64,000 nt of DNA from sequence record NC_019401.1; one strand, written 5' to 3'. Shown here one piece after another: positions 10,557-46,653 of the stretch. Under the pieces are notes generated by a model that had not been told where the DNA came from, did no database searches, and saw nothing but the letters and a program-made list of their open reading frames with translations. Made by a program: the position numbers and the translations under genes. How positions within the stretch are numbered: the stretch's first letter is position 1; every line of letters begins with the position of its first letter.

Positions 10557-10585
10557 TGAAACGATAAAAATTTTTGTGGTATAAT
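10557..10585 (+). promoter_or_regulatory. TGAAAC-N17-TATAAT promoter (RNA-gene class)
   Basis: TGAAAC 10557-62; TGTGG-TATAAT 10575-85. Confidence 0.75.
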
Positions 10586-10745: not shown

Positions 10746-11282
10746 ATGAACATATACAAAATTGCAAAAGAATTGATGAATAAGCACAATCTACAGGATT
10801 GGTCTTTCGAAATTTATGAAAGTTCAAATAAGCGTGTTCCTGGAACAACCAATACAATTGGAATGTGCATCTATCATGAAAAAGTTATCGCCATTTTAGA
10901 AGCGGTTGCTTATAGTCGTAGTGAAGAATATGTTCGTAGTTTAATATTGCATGAAATTGCACATGCATTAGCTGGTCATGAAAATGGTCATAATGAAGTA
11001 TGGCAGAAAATTGCAATAGAAATTGGTTCTAAACATATCACATCATGTGCAAACATGATTGAGTTTTTAAACCATAAAAATACAATCCGCAATTGTACTC
11101 ATCCGTATGTTTGGAAATTTATGAAGTATTTTTCAAATACTGATGAGTTAGTATTCAACTTAAACCGTATACACGGTAAAAGTACACAGTACTGGTATAA
11201 TGAATATCTAAGGATTTTAAAGTTTCAGGAACGTTTAAAAAAACGTAAAAAAATTGAAACGAATCAAAAATTTGTGGTATAA
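10746..11282 (+). CDS. SprT-like zinc metalloprotease
   Basis: LILHEIAHAL...GHNEVWQKIA (HExxH plus GH..W); start moved to ATG 10746. Confidence 0.8.
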   Translation: MNIYKIAKELMNKHNLQDWSFEIYESSNKRVPGTTNTIGMCIYHEKVIAILEAVAYSRSEEYVRSLILHEIAHALAGHENGHNEVWQKIAIEIGSKHITSCANMIEFLNHKNTIRNCTHPYVWKFMKYFSNTDELVFNLNRIHGKSTQYWYNEYLRILKFQERLKKRKKIETNQKFVV

Positions 11283-11283
11283 T
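11255..11283 (+). promoter_or_regulatory. TGAAAC-N17-TATAAT promoter (RNA-gene class)
   Basis: TGAAAC 11255-60; TGTGG-TATAAT to 11283. Confidence 0.75.
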
Positions 11284-12207: not shown

Positions 12208-12330
12208 GGGAAAGTAGCTCAGTTGGTAGAGCAGGTAAGAAAACCCAAATTACTGTATTGTAATTTCACAGCAACCATACTTCATCCACTTTTAATGGCC
12301 TGGTCGTTGGTTCAAATCCAACCTTTCCCA
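12208..12330 (+). tRNA. tRNA-Lys(TTT) interrupted by a 50-nt insertion (12236-12285) at position 28/29
   Basis: GGGAAAG/CTTTCCC; GCTC/GAGC; AGG|insert|CCA-CTTTTAA-TGG-CCT; GTTGG-TTCAAAT-CCAAC. Confidence 0.85.
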
Positions 12331-29710: not shown

Positions 29711-29739
29711 TGAAACGGTTCTAAAAAATGTGGTATAAT
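29711..29739 (+). promoter_or_regulatory. TGAAAC-N17-TATAAT promoter (RNA-gene class)
   Basis: Directly upstream of tRNA-Met. Confidence 0.75.
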
Positions 29740-37657: not shown

Positions 37658-38040
37658 TGTTGGGTTCATTGGGATTGTTCTGGAGTGATGAAGATGGTAC
37701 TATGATCCTAGCACCATGCGATGAATCACCCCAGGAGCAACAGGTGGCATATTTTTATATCCAAGTTGAAACAGATTCTGAATATAAACATATCCGAATG
37801 GATAAGTGGGATACACCAGTACGAACTAATGATCATTTCAAATGTACACGGTTCAATACATATGAAGAAGCATTAGAAGTAGTTAATAAGTTCAATCTTG
37901 TCAGTACTGGTCACGTACATAAAATCCGTCTCGCTCGCGTCACTGGTACGCATATGTGGGATGATATTGTGTACGCTCATTGCTCCTTGAAAAATCTAGG
38001 GAATGGCAAATTTGGCCTTGCAGTCAGCGAACGCATGTGA
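37657..38040 (+). CDS. hypothetical protein
   Basis: TAATG overlap. Confidence 0.65.
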   Translation: MLGSLGLFWSDEDGTMILAPCDESPQEQQVAYFYIQVETDSEYKHIRMDKWDTPVRTNDHFKCTRFNTYEEALEVVNKFNLVSTGHVHKIRLARVTGTHMWDDIVYAHCSLKNLGNGKFGLAVSERM

Positions 38041-38116
38041 TACAGTGTTTGCATAGAGAGGGGATAATGGCTCCCCTCATATTAAGTGAGAAAGTTAAAA
38101 TAGTTTCAAAAAATTC

Positions 38117-38233
38117 TTGACAGTACTAAGTAGTGTGTTATACTGATAAGGTTCAAGCGGAAAGACAAGTTTAAAAAATCTTCTCGCTAAAAGTTAAAAA
38201 GTACTTGACAGCCACTTCGCTAGATAGTAAAAT
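38117..38233 (+). promoter_or_regulatory. tandem sigma70-type promoters
   Basis: TTGACA(38117)-N16-TATACT and TTGACA(38205)-N17-TAAAAT. Confidence 0.8.
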
Positions 38234-38239
38234 GTAATC

Positions 38240-39280
38240 TCTTGATAAGGAACGTAATGTTCCGAACTGCTGATAAAGAATACAGTGTGTTTAACAGATT
38301 ATGAGGATTGAACGCAAATGTAACAGATTAATTTAAATTTTATAATTATTGATCTTAAACTAAATGAATTTGCGGCTCTGAATGAGCAAAAAGTACAGTA
38401 CTACAGCGTGTAGACTGTTGTGTAGAACCTAGCGGGAGCTGCGTTGCCCCGCGAACCGGAACTATAGGAGAACGCCATCATGAAGTAATTAATTGATTCA
38501 AACCTTTTACTTATAAAATGATGCGAGTTCTTTACTACCGAGGTGCGTTAAGCAAATACGTATGACTCTGAAAGTAGTAAGAACTGACAAATTGCAAATG
38601 AACGTTGGACACTATGAGATCCAAGGTGGAGATGAAGTTGGGCGATGCCCGATATAGAATCTGTGAAACCTGTTCATGTCTGACTTGACCCTGGAATAGT
38701 AAGGGCTTAGGAGTTCCGAGAAGTGGAGAATATTTCCGGTATAATTGGGGTGACTGATTATGGCGTCGATACCACAACTCGGATATACAATACCCCACCA
38801 GATCGGGAACGGGGAATTGCGAAATCTGTAGTAACATTGCGGGAAGTGTACGCTTGGTCGGAATCGCATTATGGGCTTAGTGCCAATTGATGGTTCCGAA
38901 GGGGTTTACCAATCGCATTATGGAGTAGAAACACGACTAACTGAGCACGGTTAGATGAAGCTGAAGTAAAAGCTTTCCCTTCAATTGGGTACGGTCGATT
39001 TTTTTATCAAGCCGTGAGTGTTTCAAACATGCATTATCTGTATAGCGTAGATACAGAACTCTTTCGAGAGAAGCTTGATTAGCGGTGCATGTGGAACTTT
39101 CCGAACAAAGTTCAGATCGAATTGCAGTACTACGAAGTTGTGTGTTATAATCAGTTCGGTGATGACTAACACACAGCGAATCATTATTAACCTTTAGTTA
39201 AGGTAGGTATCCTCCGGGATGTGCAAAGACACAGGATGCCGTAACATGGGTAAGAGTCATGTTATCTCCCGGATCTTTTA
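38240..39280 (+). ncRNA. candidate large (about 1 kb) structured non-coding RNA
   Basis: No credible ORF; raised GC; many long helices; tandem promoters at the 5' end; hairpin plus T tract at the 3' end. Confidence 0.75.
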
Positions 39281-39310
39281 ATTGAGCCTAATTGTTAAGT
39301 GAGAATTATA

Positions 39311-39541
39311 ATGAACGATTCAATCAAGAAACAACTTTTCAGTACTATCAAAGGTGTAGTTGCAGAAAAAAACATGTCTCAACGTGACTTGGCTAAAACA
39401 TTGCAAGTCTCTCAGCCTCGTGTGTCTAACCTGATGGATGAACGTAAAGATCTGTTCAGCATCGATAAACTGCTTGAATTCGTTGATACTCTAGGGTATG
39501 ATGTTCAAATCAAAGCAGAGAAAAAGGAAGAAGCACTATGA
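39311..39541 (+). CDS. XRE/HigA-like helix-turn-helix regulator
   Basis: MSQRDLAKTLQVSQPRVSNLM...FSIDKLLEFVDTLGYDVQI. Confidence 0.85.
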   Translation: MNDSIKKQLFSTIKGVVAEKNMSQRDLAKTLQVSQPRVSNLMDERKDLFSIDKLLEFVDTLGYDVQIKAEKKEEAL

Positions 39542-39781
39542 AAGAGTATATCGTAGAGTACTTCATGAAAGGTGGTTCGAACCCCTTAGCGACTCGCCAG
39601 TTCGCTCACAATGAAGCGATGGCACGTAAAAACGCACAACTCGAAAAAGGTCAGGATATTGTTATCCGCAGCGTTCGACCAGCATAATTTTAAGTTAGTT
39701 GAAAATTGAAAAAAGCCAGCCTAAGCTCTGGCTTTTTTTATTGGTAAATTTTGGTTGTTGTTAATTTGTACGGAGATAAAT

Positions 39782-40777
39782 GTGAGTCCAAAGAAATTAA
39801 ACTTAGATGCAATTCAGGACGAAATTCTTGATGAATGTTTTGAAGCAGAAGAAAAAACAATTGAATCACTTGATGTTGATGATTCAGAATTAGAAGAAGA
39901 TTCTGCTAGTACTGATGATGTACATCACGGTTTAACAATGGATAAAATAAAAACTACTATCAAATCTGATCAGTACATTAGCAACGAAGAATTAGTTCGT
40001 AAAGTACAATCTGGTATTGACGTAGAAGAATCCAAAAAACTACTAGTAATGTACAACAGCGGATTAGTTTACAACGAAGCAAAAAACTGTACTTGTAATA
40101 TCCCATTCCAGGATAAAGTACAATATGGTTTCGAAGGTCTAATGAAAGCTATCTACGGATTTAACACTTCATTCCGTACATTGTTTAGTACTTACGCTAC
40201 TACAACAATTCGTCAGCATATGTACCGAAATGGTAATAATGACGTTCGTATGGTTGCCCTACCTGAACATCTGTCTGTTAACAATATTCGTATACAATCT
40301 TTTATTGAACGTTATATGAATGATAATACTGGTTATCCAAGTAATGAACAAATTGCAGAAGCTACTGGTATTGATATTCGTTCAGTAAAACGTATCATGA
40401 ACTACAACAGTAATACTTTTAGTATCGATACACCAATGAACAAAGGTGACGAAGGTTCTGAACAAACACTAAAAGATATTATCGCTGGTGAAAGTGCTGA
40501 TTATGTGGTTGATGAACGTTGTGTTGCAAAAGACTTTGTAAGTACAATGGAAGAAATCATGAATGAACTTGAAGAACATGAACGTGTTCTACTTGGGTTA
40601 GTTCACGGTTTAGATGGTTATCGTATTCATACGTTTGATGAAATTATTAACACTGGATACATTGATGGTAAAGGAAAGTTCGTAACTTCTAAAGCTACAC
40701 TATCTCGTCGTTACAATGATATGATGGATAAAGTACGTCGTATTGTTGAACGTAAACAAATCAACTTTGATCTTTAA
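39782..40777 (+). CDS. sigma70-like RNA polymerase sigma factor
   Basis: Region 2 (DKVQYGFEGLMKAIYGF...FSTYATTTIRQ) and region 3 (PSNEQIAEATG, SIDTP); GTG start with GGAG RBS. Confidence 0.85.
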   Translation: MSPKKLNLDAIQDEILDECFEAEEKTIESLDVDDSELEEDSASTDDVHHGLTMDKIKTTIKSDQYISNEELVRKVQSGIDVEESKKLLVMYNSGLVYNEAKNCTCNIPFQDKVQYGFEGLMKAIYGFNTSFRTLFSTYATTTIRQHMYRNGNNDVRMVALPEHLSVNNIRIQSFIERYMNDNTGYPSNEQIAEATGIDIRSVKRIMNYNSNTFSIDTPMNKGDEGSEQTLKDIIAGESADYVVDERCVAKDFVSTMEEIMNELEEHERVLLGLVHGLDGYRIHTFDEIINTGYIDGKGKFVTSKATLSRRYNDMMDKVRRIVERKQINFDL

Positions 40778-40789
40778 AGGGTATACATA

Positions 40790-41299
40790 GTGCTTCCATC
40801 ACAAGAAGAATTAAAACGTATATTTGATTATGATGAAAGTACTGGTGCTTTAACGTGGAAGTACCGTGAAGATGCAGAACCTGAATGGAACACCCGTTAT
40901 GCAGGTAAGCCAGCATTAACAACGGTTCACGCCAAAGGTTATCTTTATGGTACACTTTTAAATAAATCGGTACGTGCACATCGTGTTATATGGAAATTGT
41001 TGTATGGCGTTGAACCAAACAAAATTGATCATATAAACGGAGTACGTGATGATAATAGAAAGGAAAATTTAAGAAGCGTTACTACCCAGGAAAATCAAAA
41101 AAATTTAAAGAAACGTTCCGATAACAAATCTGGTTATTCAGGAGTTCAATACAGAAAAGATATTGGAAAATATCGTGCTTATATCACCGTTGATAAAAAG
41201 CAAGTTAGCTTAGGTGTATTTGAAACAATTGAAGAAGCTATAAAAATTCGGAAAGAAGCAGAAATTAAATATAACTTTCATCCTAATCATGGTAGGTAA
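40790..41299 (+). mobile_element. HNH-AP2 homing endonuclease
   Basis: AHRVIW...DHINGVRDDNRKENLR...EN; C-terminal AP2 domain SGYSGVQY...YRAYI...LGVF. Confidence 0.9.
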
Positions 41300-45539: not shown

Positions 45540-46002
45540 AATGAACACACCTCAGCAACATACGTTGGAACAAGCAAAAGCCCTGCTGGATAGTGCAGAT
45601 CATGGTGATCCACTTCATTGGGAACTCGCAAAATATCTGTTCCGTAACATGAATTCAGTTGAATTCGCAATCAAATCTGGATGGCTTCAGAATTCATCAG
45701 ACGATGACAAAGAATTCTCTGAAAAATTTGTTTCGTTGCGTGACCAATACCAACAGTTGTTCGAAGATGAATCGGGTACTGCATCTGTACCAGAATATTG
45801 CACTGAAGTAATTCCAGATATTCTGGATTACTACGACTTTAGTACTGAAGCGGGTCAAATCATTCTCAACATGATTAAGACACATGTCGCTCAGAACTAT
45901 GCGGCTGGTATGGAAAACAATCCAGATGAGTACGCTAAACTGAATCAGGAGATTCAGGGAAAGATCGAAAAAATTGACCAAAATATGAAACCACAAAATT
46001 AA
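45529..46002 (+). CDS. hypothetical protein
   Basis: GAGGG RBS before ATG 45541. Confidence 0.7.
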   Translation: MRDKMNTPQQHTLEQAKALLDSADHGDPLHWELAKYLFRNMNSVEFAIKSGWLQNSSDDDKEFSEKFVSLRDQYQQLFEDESGTASVPEYCTEVIPDILDYYDFSTEAGQIILNMIKTHVAQNYAAGMENNPDEYAKLNQEIQGKIEKIDQNMKPQN

Positions 46003-46014
46003 TTGTGGTATAAT
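45986..46014 (+). promoter_or_regulatory. TGAAAC-N17-TATAAT promoter (RNA-gene class)
   Basis: Directly upstream of an ORF-less structured region. Confidence 0.75.
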
Positions 46015-46020
46015 CATATA

Positions 46021-46500
46021 GACAATCCTGTTTGATAGGGAGGGTTAAACCTCCCTAATGATTTGCACCCACTTCAATGAAAATGTAATTGATGGATGAG
46101 AAGTTCAAGCAGTTCGCAGAGCAAAAGAAACCCGTCAGGATTCGGCATAGTTTGTACCGACCACGGCAATGCGGCTCTATAAAGAAGTACATCTAATCGT
46201 TATCAGTACTTCCTCGATAGACATATAAGTGCAACCTTACCAAAACGATAAGGGAGAATATGCACCGATTTTGTACAATATAGATCCGTCCAAAATTTGT
46301 GAATCATATTCAAGTACTTTGTTTGATTGTATAGACAAGTATTAAGTGAGCTAAGACCTCGACCGTTGTTAGAACTGAAATAGGAAGAAACAGGACAACC
46401 CGCTTCCGTGCTGCAAAGCAATTTTCAATACAATTGCCGACGACTATCATCGTCAGTTTTCATCCTCCAGCGGGGGGATGAAAATGCCTCAACAAATCTC
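46021..46500 (+). ncRNA. candidate structured non-coding RNA (about 0.48 kb)
   Basis: RNA-class promoter; helices AATCCTG/CAGGATT, TAGGGAGG/CCTCCCTA, GAAGTAC/GTACTTC, TTTTCATCC/GGATGAAAA. Confidence 0.65.
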
Positions 46501-46653
46501 GTCAGTAATAAATGTGTTTAACGTGGTACAGTTGAATTTTAAATAAATGATTTTCTTGCGGCGAAGCGTAAGAAAATCCTTGACTTGCGACAGCAAGGCG
46601 AGTACGATACATTCATTCACACAGAATAACTACTTTTCATTTAGGGGTATTAC

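Follow-up and report, generated by a model that had tools for sequence, protein, structure and literature searches.

A candidate family of large, modular, structured non-coding RNA in Cronobacter phage GAP32 and related jumbo phages

The genome of Cronobacter phage vB_CsaM_GAP32 (JN882285, 358,663 bp, Mimasvirus) very probably encodes a large, structured non-coding RNA (ncRNA) of modular build, one of a family not catalogued before. The locus was studied within the last 64 kb (right end) of this jumbo-phage genome, hereafter the window, whose numbering is used throughout; it occupies positions 38040–39310, which are 100% identical to 332703–333973 of the record. The RNA lies in a 1.27 kb gap (38041–39310) between GAP32_487, which ends at 38040, and GAP32_488, the gene of a helix-turn-helix (HTH) regulator that is followed by a 49-aa open reading frame (ORF) and a phage sigma-70 gene. 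A preliminary description of the sequence had proposed a large ornate ncRNA, possibly of a new class, and this proposal is upheld, the region being non-coding, promoter-driven, conserved, covarying and without a match in Rfam. The sequence strings quoted in that description were all located where it had placed them. It had also named the region as the largest non-coding stretch; when plus-strand ORFs of at least 70 aa are counted, 38041–39298 is only the second-largest gap of the window, but the larger one and other comparable gaps contain tRNA genes or the minus-strand gene GAP32_475. The region is indeed GC-richer than its surroundings, with 0.42–0.46 over 38350–39100 against about 0.32–0.39 in the flanks.

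The 3′ domain of the RNA (38928–39179, 252 nt) was analysed with RNAalifold in ten sequences, giving 68 pairs in 11 helices, 33–34 of them with compensatory double changes. Standard pairs are formed in 97.3% of the cells, compared with 36–46% when the 3′ partners are slid by 1–3 columns, and the slid controls contain 3–7 compensatory pairs rather than 34. The covariation score of the domain was reached by none of 500 column shuffles. Its helices contain 62 G·U but only three A·C combinations, indicating that the folded molecule is plus-strand RNA and neither DNA nor an antisense transcript. Folding energies are −274.7 kcal/mol for the plus strand (z = −4.8, 20 shuffles) and −223.7 kcal/mol for the minus strand, a difference of 51 kcal/mol. 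These comparative data show that the RNA would fold, as a plus-strand molecule, into covarying multi-helix junctions.

It is extremely unlikely that no RNA is involved and that the region is a decayed coding sequence or a DNA element (for example a replication origin, packaging site or operator array). Small ORFs are annotated in this gap in the GenBank records of GAP32 and of the related phages Kaldavass, BF and pEa_SNUABM_49 (SNU49), and the region is rich in inverted repeats, but the compensatory changes keep pairing, the 62 G·U against three A·C fit only a plus-strand RNA, and the invariant 24-mer of the 5′ region (described below) is unrepeated elsewhere in the window. Nor do the lineages have an ORF in common or show codon periodicity, in keeping with the original reading of the region as ORF-less. 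A conserved protein-coding frame was looked for among the homologs and none was found: ORFs of at least 30 aa differ in position, frame and length, and the six-frame ORF 'matches' seen between homologs arise because the DNA is conserved, none of them being co-linear. Variable columns per codon position number 47/52/49 in the 3′ domain and 106/115/108 in the whole RNA (five phages), compared with 102/65/261 in the sigma gene, and codon-position bias was absent from every 150-nt window of the RNA alignment.

The only GenBank coding sequence inside the GAP32 RNA is GAP32_487A (38723–38890, plus strand), a GTG-started frame of 55 aa. Its segment is missing from CBB and the Eneladusvirus phages, no orthologous ORF was found and sliding windows show no periodicity, and the annotation is probably spurious when judged in this way. 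The ORF calls in the Kaldavass, BF and SNU49 records are small, mutually unrelated and placed on either strand of the RNA. Jumbo-phage annotation misses kilobase-scale RNA genes or mis-annotates them as small ORFs.

The 3′ domain comprises two multi-helix junctions followed by two further hairpins, all on the plus strand. Junction 1 (38928–39024) is formed by a helix, GAAACAC/GUGUUUC, around four hairpins; compensatory changes give GGAACAC/GUGUUCC in locus L010 and GAAAUUC/GAAUUUC in fHe-Yen9-04 (Yen9-04). In junction 2 (39027–39092), the helix ACAUGCAUU/GGUGCAUGU surrounds a hairpin with an AGCGUAG loop, a CUCU-UUCG-AGAG hairpin and a 3-bp hairpin, with compensatory changes in 7/9, 4/7 and 2/4 pairs. 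Next come a hairpin GAACUUU/AAAGUUC (39094–39113) with the loop CCGAAC (39101–39106), in which five of the seven pairs covary, and a near-invariant single strand, UUGCAGUACUACGAA (39122–39136), that includes CUACG at 39130–39134. The domain ends with the hairpin GUUGUGUGUUA/UAACACACAGC (39137–39179), which has an inner UCA/UGA helix and a GUUCGG loop, is followed by AGCGA, and shows compensatory changes in 4 of 11 and 1 of 3 pairs. Among the helices picked out in the preliminary description, TCTGTAT/ATACAGA, CTCT-TTCG-AGAG, TGTGTGTTA/TAACACACA and the hairpin at 38526–38585 are confirmed by covariation in ten homologs.

The hexaloop CCGAAC is the exact complement of the terminal loop GUUCGG (39154–39159), and in Yen9-04 the two read CCAAAC and GUUUGG. 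Similarly, CGUAG within the AGCGUAG loop (39046–39050) complements the CUACG of the single strand; all cells (100%) can pair, and the changes are one-sided only, from U-A to G·U in L010 and L015. With one event each, these observations point modestly to two tertiary pairings, which may be intramolecular or intermolecular.

A BLASTn search of related jumbo phages, suggested in the preliminary description, recovered the homologous gap in 18 phage records. The matches extend over 40–70% of the length of the region in Kaldavass, XbC2 and CBB, and over only the 3′ 145–250 nt in Eneladusvirus (BF, pEa_SNUABM_12/19/44/47/49/50, fHe-Yen9-03/04). In all 18 records the match falls within a gap of 0.7–1.6 kb, either ORF-free or dubiously annotated, at the same place in the gene order. 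Exact-pattern scans with the invariant 24-mer added metagenomic and IMG/VR contigs of 349–371 kb, amounting to only about 12 loci from these sources, and gave no match in 185,579 bacterial and archaeal genomes (GTDB). One further candidate, L029, was rejected as a chance match inside a gene. Removal of duplicates left 11 distinct versions of the RNA from Mimasvirus, Eneladusvirus and metagenomic contigs, with pairwise identities of 39–97%, and in 11 distinct relatives the gap lies upstream of the HTH, 49-aa and phage sigma-70 gene block in the same orientation. Distant relatives that encode the sigma factor (7t3, Hallingskeid, EJP2 and 121Q) have no comparable gap upstream of it and no detectable homolog. 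Judged by these searches, the RNA family is specific to Mimasvirus/Eneladusvirus jumbo phages infecting Enterobacterales.

The RNA is conserved to about the same degree as the sigma region. Between GAP32 and pEa_SNUABM_50 (SNU50), the 3′ domain is 73.5% identical and the stretch with the 49-aa ORF and sigma gene 74.8%; between GAP32 and XbC2, the RNA is 77.4% identical over 964 nt and the sigma region 72.4%. Several flanking protein genes are wholly unalignable between GAP32 and the compared relatives. As far as alignments can tell, purifying selection on the RNA region is shown.

Two strong tandem promoters had been predicted upstream of the RNA, at 38117 and 38205, and both hold up in score and in conservation. 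P1 (38117–38144, plus strand) reads TTGACA-16-TATACT with TG before the −10 element and an upstream A-tract, and P2 (38205–38233, plus strand) reads TTGACA-17-TAAAAT, also with an upstream A-tract; each scored 11 of 12 in a sigma-70 scan (match to TTGACA-N16/17-TATAAT, out of 12). P1 is conserved in GAP32, Kaldavass, XbC2, CBB, SNU50 and BF. The −35 element of P2 and its context are conserved in the eight homologs first aligned, and TTGACA-type promoters occupy the same place in the metagenomic homologs. Upstream of P1, a hairpin GAGGGG...CCCCTC (38058–38078, plus strand) that is conserved in Kaldavass, XbC2 and CBB ends the preceding operon (GAP32_487), making the RNA a separate transcription unit. 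Transcription from P2 would start at about 38238–38241, and the predicted length of the GAP32 RNA is about 1.04 kb from P2 or 1.13 kb from P1, with 0.46–1.1 kb in relatives. The CBB genome paper describes this region as an early-gene block with RpoD-like promoters carrying UP elements, and assigns the regulator and the sigma factor to host take-over (PMC5259590).

At the other end, the fold has a 3′ terminal structure (39213–39279, plus strand) consisting of a branched GC stem, UCCGGGA...UCCCGGA (39213–39273), around two small hairpins, and then UCUUUU, about 30 nt 5′ of the HTH start codon. The terminal stem and T tract reported earlier are thus only partly borne out, as the stem is present in the fold, but it is branched, is followed by only four T and was passed over by the terminator scan. 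In homologs (Kaldavass, L020 and others) this position is taken by a simpler GC hairpin whose tail, CUUUUAAUU, is conserved, and the GAP32 structure is probably a leaky terminator. Neither inspection of the sequence nor the promoter scan revealed a promoter in the interval from the GAP32 structure to the start of the HTH gene, so that some read-through into this gene is likely.

The most widespread module of the RNA is an invariant 24-mer, GAGGAUUGAACGCA(A/G)AUGUAACAG (38303–38326, plus strand), which lies about 65 nt after the predicted P2 start and has AU-rich flanks. It is made up of a Shine-Dalgarno-like GAGGA, a 10-nt spacer and a start-stop AUG-UAA, and is identical in all 11 homologs (11/11) save at the one A/G position. 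The 64-kb window contains it only once, which led to the rejection of a role as a repeated operator or promoter in the DNA. The leader that precedes it (38238–38302, plus strand) has a conserved CUCU-N-AAG...GAAC at the extreme 5′ end, a hairpin GGAAC/GUUCC (38249–38263) and a UAAC-containing A-rich run, as seen in the alignment and fold. Pairing of the 24-mer with CUGUUCAUGU (38669–38679) recurs in RNAduplex and was rejected, the A/G change being uncompensated; that strand pairs instead with AUGAAC, with a compensatory change in CBB. A long-range pairing with UUGCAGUACUACG is proposed by RNAalifold, both sides of which are invariant, and the 24-mer persists where the 3′ domain is absent. A second mini-ORF occurs downstream (38466–38488, plus strand), with AGGAG at 38466–38470, N9 and AUG AAG UAA at 38480–38488; it lies inside a hairpin and is kept, together with its Shine-Dalgarno-like sequence, in 9 of 11 homologs.

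Such motifs raise the alternative of a translation-targeting RNA, in which the start-stop module and the AUG-AAG-UAA minigene capture ribosomes, thereby protecting the RNA or perturbing host translation, as lambda bar minigenes do. The invariance of GAGGA, the 10-nt spacer and AUGUAA in 12 lineages, within AU-rich flanks, and the retention of a second mini-ORF with a Shine-Dalgarno-like sequence of its own are consistent with this. However, the Shine-Dalgarno core amounts to no more than GAGG and lies at a distance of 11 nt from the AUG, and ribosome binding alone cannot explain an invariant spacer; the predicted accessibility of the 24-mer is average, the second mini-ORF is buried in a hairpin, and the 3′ domain is left unexplained. 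Translation targeting is considered quite unlikely, although ribosome capture by the start-stop module could coexist with a trans-acting, leader or precursor role.

Beyond the 24-mer, an AU-rich spacer leads to the hairpins of the 5′ domain (38327–38525, plus strand; from alignments and the minimum-free-energy fold) and then to a long hairpin, AGTTCTTTACTAC/GTAGTAAGAACT (38526–38585), with a conserved RGCAA-containing loop. This hairpin, already recognised in the preliminary description, is present in the minimum-free-energy fold and is kept with altered stems, which differ in sequence yet pair in L010, CBB, SNU50 and Yen9-04, always with the RGCAA loop. The central domain (38592–38679, plus strand) is formed by AUGAAC (38598–38603) and GUUCAU (38672–38677) around two hairpins and conserved GUGGAGA, AGAAUC and UGAA strands. 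Its closing helix is AAGAAC/GUUCUU in CBB and L021, and the domain is also found in L020. The next hairpin, (G)CCCUKG-AAUAG-UAAGGGC (38687–38707, plus strand), is conserved with covarying pairs, and taken together with the central domain it has 14 compensatory pairs out of 21 (RNAalifold, 10 sequences).

A lineage-variable expansion (38708–38860, plus strand) follows. It overlaps GAP32_487A, has been deleted from CBB and from the Eneladusvirus phages, and is larger in XbC2. The conserved segment between it and the 3′ domain (38861–38927, plus strand) has a local hairpin and contains AATCGCATTATGG at 38862 and 38911 and CCAATTGA at 38883. The two copies of AATCGCATTATGG had been described as a 13-nt direct repeat; they are exact in GAP32, but only there. 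A helix proposed between CCAATTGA and TCAATTGG (38883/38981) has to be discarded, as it is unconserved and CCAATTGA is part of a different, local hairpin; TCAATTGG occurs only in GAP32, where it caps a local CCC/GGG hairpin within junction 1. On comparison with the homologs, both this helix and the 13-nt repeat are GAP32-specific coincidences.

A cmscan search of 37900–39500 against Rfam 15 (4227 families) gave no match, either at gathering score or, with relaxed filters, at E ≤ 10, and nine homologous loci likewise had no Rfam 15 match. The set included GOLLD, ROOL, OLE, raiA, HEARO, group I/II introns, RNase P, tmRNA, 6S and T-box, and so covered the models against which a search had been proposed; the relaxed scan returned noise only, for example snoRNA-like hits at E > 0.3. 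ARAGORN found nothing in 37900–39500. A group I or group II intron was rejected, there being no Rfam intron model match, no interrupted gene and complete flanking genes, each flank with its own stop codon and promoters; the earlier statements that flanking exons and a group II domain V are lacking agree with this. Full-text searches of the literature gave no description of the GAP32 RNA and no RNA-seq of GAP32 or close relatives.

RNAs are classed as large and ornate if they reach at least several hundred nt, lack coding potential, form a multi-domain structure supported by covariation and are expressed as a discrete, stable transcript. In length (about 1.04 kb), absence of coding potential and covarying multi-domain structure, the GAP32 RNA, whose transcript is predicted from promoter and terminator sequences, is of this kind, which is a kind and not a family. 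To our knowledge, very few bacterial or phage RNAs longer than about 500 nt are known apart from ribosomal RNA. GOLLD (RF01998) and ROOL (RF03087) resemble it in being non-coding and several hundred to about 1000 nt long, in their multi-domain covarying structures, whose loops and junctions are conserved and whose peripheral hairpins vary, and in being phage-borne, in tRNA-gene-rich genomes or regions. In contrast to them, the GAP32 RNA has an invariant 5′ Shine-Dalgarno/start-stop module and a fixed place upstream of a phage sigma-factor operon, and it is found in lytic Enterobacterales jumbo phages rather than in Lactobacillales, rumen or lake sequences; it matches neither of them in sequence or structure. 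Multimeric cages of GOLLD and ROOL are reported from cryo-electron microscopy in a preprint (bioRxiv 10.1101/2024.12.08.627333). By this comparison, the GAP32 RNA is of the same general kind as GOLLD and ROOL but a new family, without homology to them.

The distant Rak2-like jumbo phage PA5oct has two ORF-less RNAs, ncRNA001 and ncRNA002, at 2–5% of phage reads (PMC7318152). They resemble the GAP32 RNA as ORF-free loci of a distantly related jumbo phage, but are 236 and 451 nt long and located in the terminal repeat. A large screen for structured viral RNAs contained elements only up to 151 nt (PMC10690425).

A trans-acting structured RNA or ribonucleoprotein (RNP), serving as a scaffold or decoy, is rated the most likely mechanism, at a little short of an even chance. 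This rating follows from the size of the RNA, its conserved loops and junction strands and variable peripheral expansions, and from the absence of conserved coupling between the 3′ domain and the terminator. Host RNA polymerase (E-sigma70) would make the RNA in large amounts immediately after infection, most transcripts would end at the leaky hairpin-U4 terminator, and the RNA, once folded, would serve in trans as scaffold or decoy, with a macromolecule of the host or the phage as its partner while the host is being taken over. The invariant 5′ module (GAGGA, 10 nt, AUG-UAA) may be a docking and stabilising site for ribosomes or a protein, and the conserved loops (CCGAAC with GUUCGG, AGCGUAG with CUACG) would hold the 3′ domain together or join one molecule to another. 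A fuller scheme, tentative and on balance unlikely, has the RNA engaging core host machinery within minutes, with ribosomes or RNA polymerase/Nus docking on the 5′ module, and the 3′ domain forming a particle (RNA alone or RNP) that aids the hand-over to phage sigma, with CCGAAC/GUUCGG kissing loops possibly joining separate molecules. There is a slight chance that the mechanism is something other than a trans-acting RNA, a cis-acting leader or a precursor of several RNAs.

Several points weigh against the main explanation, a family of large structured RNAs acting in trans. The neighbouring proteins offer no clue to its function, all being of unknown function except the HTH_37 regulator, the sigma factor and an HNH endonuclease, and their analysis does not indicate a binding partner. 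The ends of the GAP32 transcript are predictions, and no intrinsic terminator was called by the scan at its 3′ end; such a terminator would have an unbranched GC-rich hairpin directly followed by a U-tract of at least 5, and the stem here is branched and followed by four T. The accessibility predicted for the 24-mer is average, not unusually high. The 3′ domain is known from no more than about seven independent lineages, and few events therefore underlie the covariation statistics. Parts of the RNA are also found on their own: L020 has the 5′ and central domains with a different 3′ part, without the 3′ domain; L023 has the 5′ domain only, about 460 nt leading straight into the HTH ORF; and the Xanthomonas phage XaC1 has only the 5′ motif (22 of 24 nt), the large RNA being absent. 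Modules that travel separately imply that the RNA may not act as one unit, and make a giant leader or a multi-RNA precursor conceivable.

In XaC1 a sigma-70 promoter precedes the motif by about 55 nt, ordinary ORFs come after it, and the sigma gene is located 1.3 kb downstream. Its sequence is GAGGATTGAACGCAGATGTAAC (L030, 2450–2600), within a short intergenic leader between two sigma-70-type promoters. The separability of the modules suggests that the 24-mer is the older, self-sufficient element of an early transcript heading toward the sigma gene. In terms of distribution, the large folded body is an elaboration in Mimasvirus, Eneladusvirus and close relatives.

If the transcript were a precursor of several RNAs (5′ module, central domain and 3′ domain) that are cut apart post-transcriptionally and act separately, the independent distribution of modules among relatives, the AU-rich linkers between them and the lack of any inter-domain helix with covariation support would be accounted for. 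GAP32 has no internal promoters or terminators, however, and in ten homologs the modules keep both their order and their spacing. RNAalifold also pairs the invariant 24-mer with an invariant 3′ strand, neither side of which varies. A precursor of this type is regarded as improbable.

The main rival to the trans-acting RNA, possible though still unlikely, is a giant cis-acting leader or attenuator of the early operon (HTH, 49-aa protein and perhaps sigma), in which the 5′ module or the folded body would set passage through the leaky terminator as a timing switch to phage-sigma-dependent transcription. The RNA is always upstream of the HTH, 49-aa and sigma genes in the same orientation; in GAP32 the terminator has only four U and the 30 nt that separate the terminal hairpin from the HTH start codon contain no promoter, in L023 there is no terminator before the HTH ORF, and XaC1 keeps the 24-mer alone, in a short 5′ untranslated region at the same locus. 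Most homologs, on the other hand, have variable sequence, an extra promoter and a small conserved element between the 3′ domain and the terminator, and with variable sequence there, no conserved antiterminator/terminator alternative pairing is available. The first gene downstream varies by lineage (HTH, a 156-aa protein or a 72-aa protein), a strong terminator stands between the 49-aa ORF and sigma, and about 900 nt of covarying structure far exceeds the needs of known leaders.

Known antitermination RNAs provide a comparison for a role in cis. Lambda nut/boxA, HK022 put and the rrn leader share with the GAP32 RNA a conserved element shortly downstream of early promoters and terminators between this element and the regulatory genes. 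They are 15–70 nt in length compared with 1 kb, and no conserved put-like double hairpin was found in the GAP32 RNA. The boxA consensus is GCUCUUUAACAA, to which the 5′ end of the RNA (CUCUUGAUAA, ACUCUUAAG) bears a faint likeness, with 5–8 of 9–12 matches by eye; this likeness is partial and inconsistent among the homologs.

The extra promoter found in Kaldavass, XbC2, CBB and L015 (CTTGACAACCAGGGAAyAGCCGACTATACT) lies between the last hairpin of the RNA and the HTH gene. After it come a conserved segment of about 100 nt, UAGAUUCCCCrCUACCUGU...GGUAAAG.UGUUUCGG, and then the GC hairpin with CUUUUAAUU. The segment is located at about 3900–4099 of L002, with equivalents in L003, L004, L005, L006 and L015. 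It is kept without a consensus promoter in pEa_SNUABM_50 and BF, and GAP32 is without both. The promoter and segment may represent a separate small RNA or attenuator.

Lytic carriers of the RNA that can be cultured include GAP32, CBB, BF, the pEa_SNUABM phages and fHe-Yen9-04, and their Enterobacterales hosts are related to laboratory models. Culturable phages, clear promoters, the sigma-operon neighbourhood and natural truncations make the role of a giant phage RNA directly testable.

Downstream of the RNA, the plus strand carries the HTH_37 regulator gene GAP32_488 (39311–39541), the 49-aa ORF (39538–39687), a strong terminator and the RpoD-like sigma-70 gene (39782–40777), and the same gene order is found 3′ of the RNA in homologs. 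In GAP32 the sigma gene is directly followed by GAP32_491 (40790–41299, plus strand), which encodes an HNH endonuclease with an AP2 domain. CBB lacks such a gene here, and in other relatives small unrelated ORFs occupy the site; GAP32_491 looks like a mobile homing-endonuclease insertion.

The window also contains 19 tRNA genes, spread over 1.5–30 kb. Three exact copies of TGAAACG-N16-TATAAT, each with TGTGG before the −10 element, are found at 10557–10585, 11255–11283 and 29711–29739, with 0.07 expected by chance. All three are directly upstream of tRNA clusters and belong to the 'divergent RpoD-like' type described for CBB and GAP32; on the basis of position, they appear to drive the tRNA genes of the window. 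One tRNA match (12208–12330, plus strand; 49.5 bits) spans 123 nt for a 71-position model, a length that implies a sizeable insert, for example an intron or an extended extra arm.

Another conserved block without ORFs, about 0.5 kb long, is located at 45986–46560 (plus strand), behind a strong phage promoter, TGAAACC-N16-TGTGGTATAAT. It is 69–72% identical over about 400–440 nt to ORF-free blocks beside the sigma gene in Asteriusvirus (121Q, L028 5464–6186; EJP2, L027 7766–8397), and blastn with the 121Q block matched 62 phage records across Asterius-, Mimas- and Eneladusvirus, 7t3/Munch, fENko-Kae01 and XaC1. Like the GAP32 RNA, it is ORF-free, promoter-driven, conserved in jumbo phages and without an Rfam match, but it is unrelated in sequence, has a different type of promoter and is much more widely distributed. 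It is probably another, more widespread ncRNA of jumbo phages.

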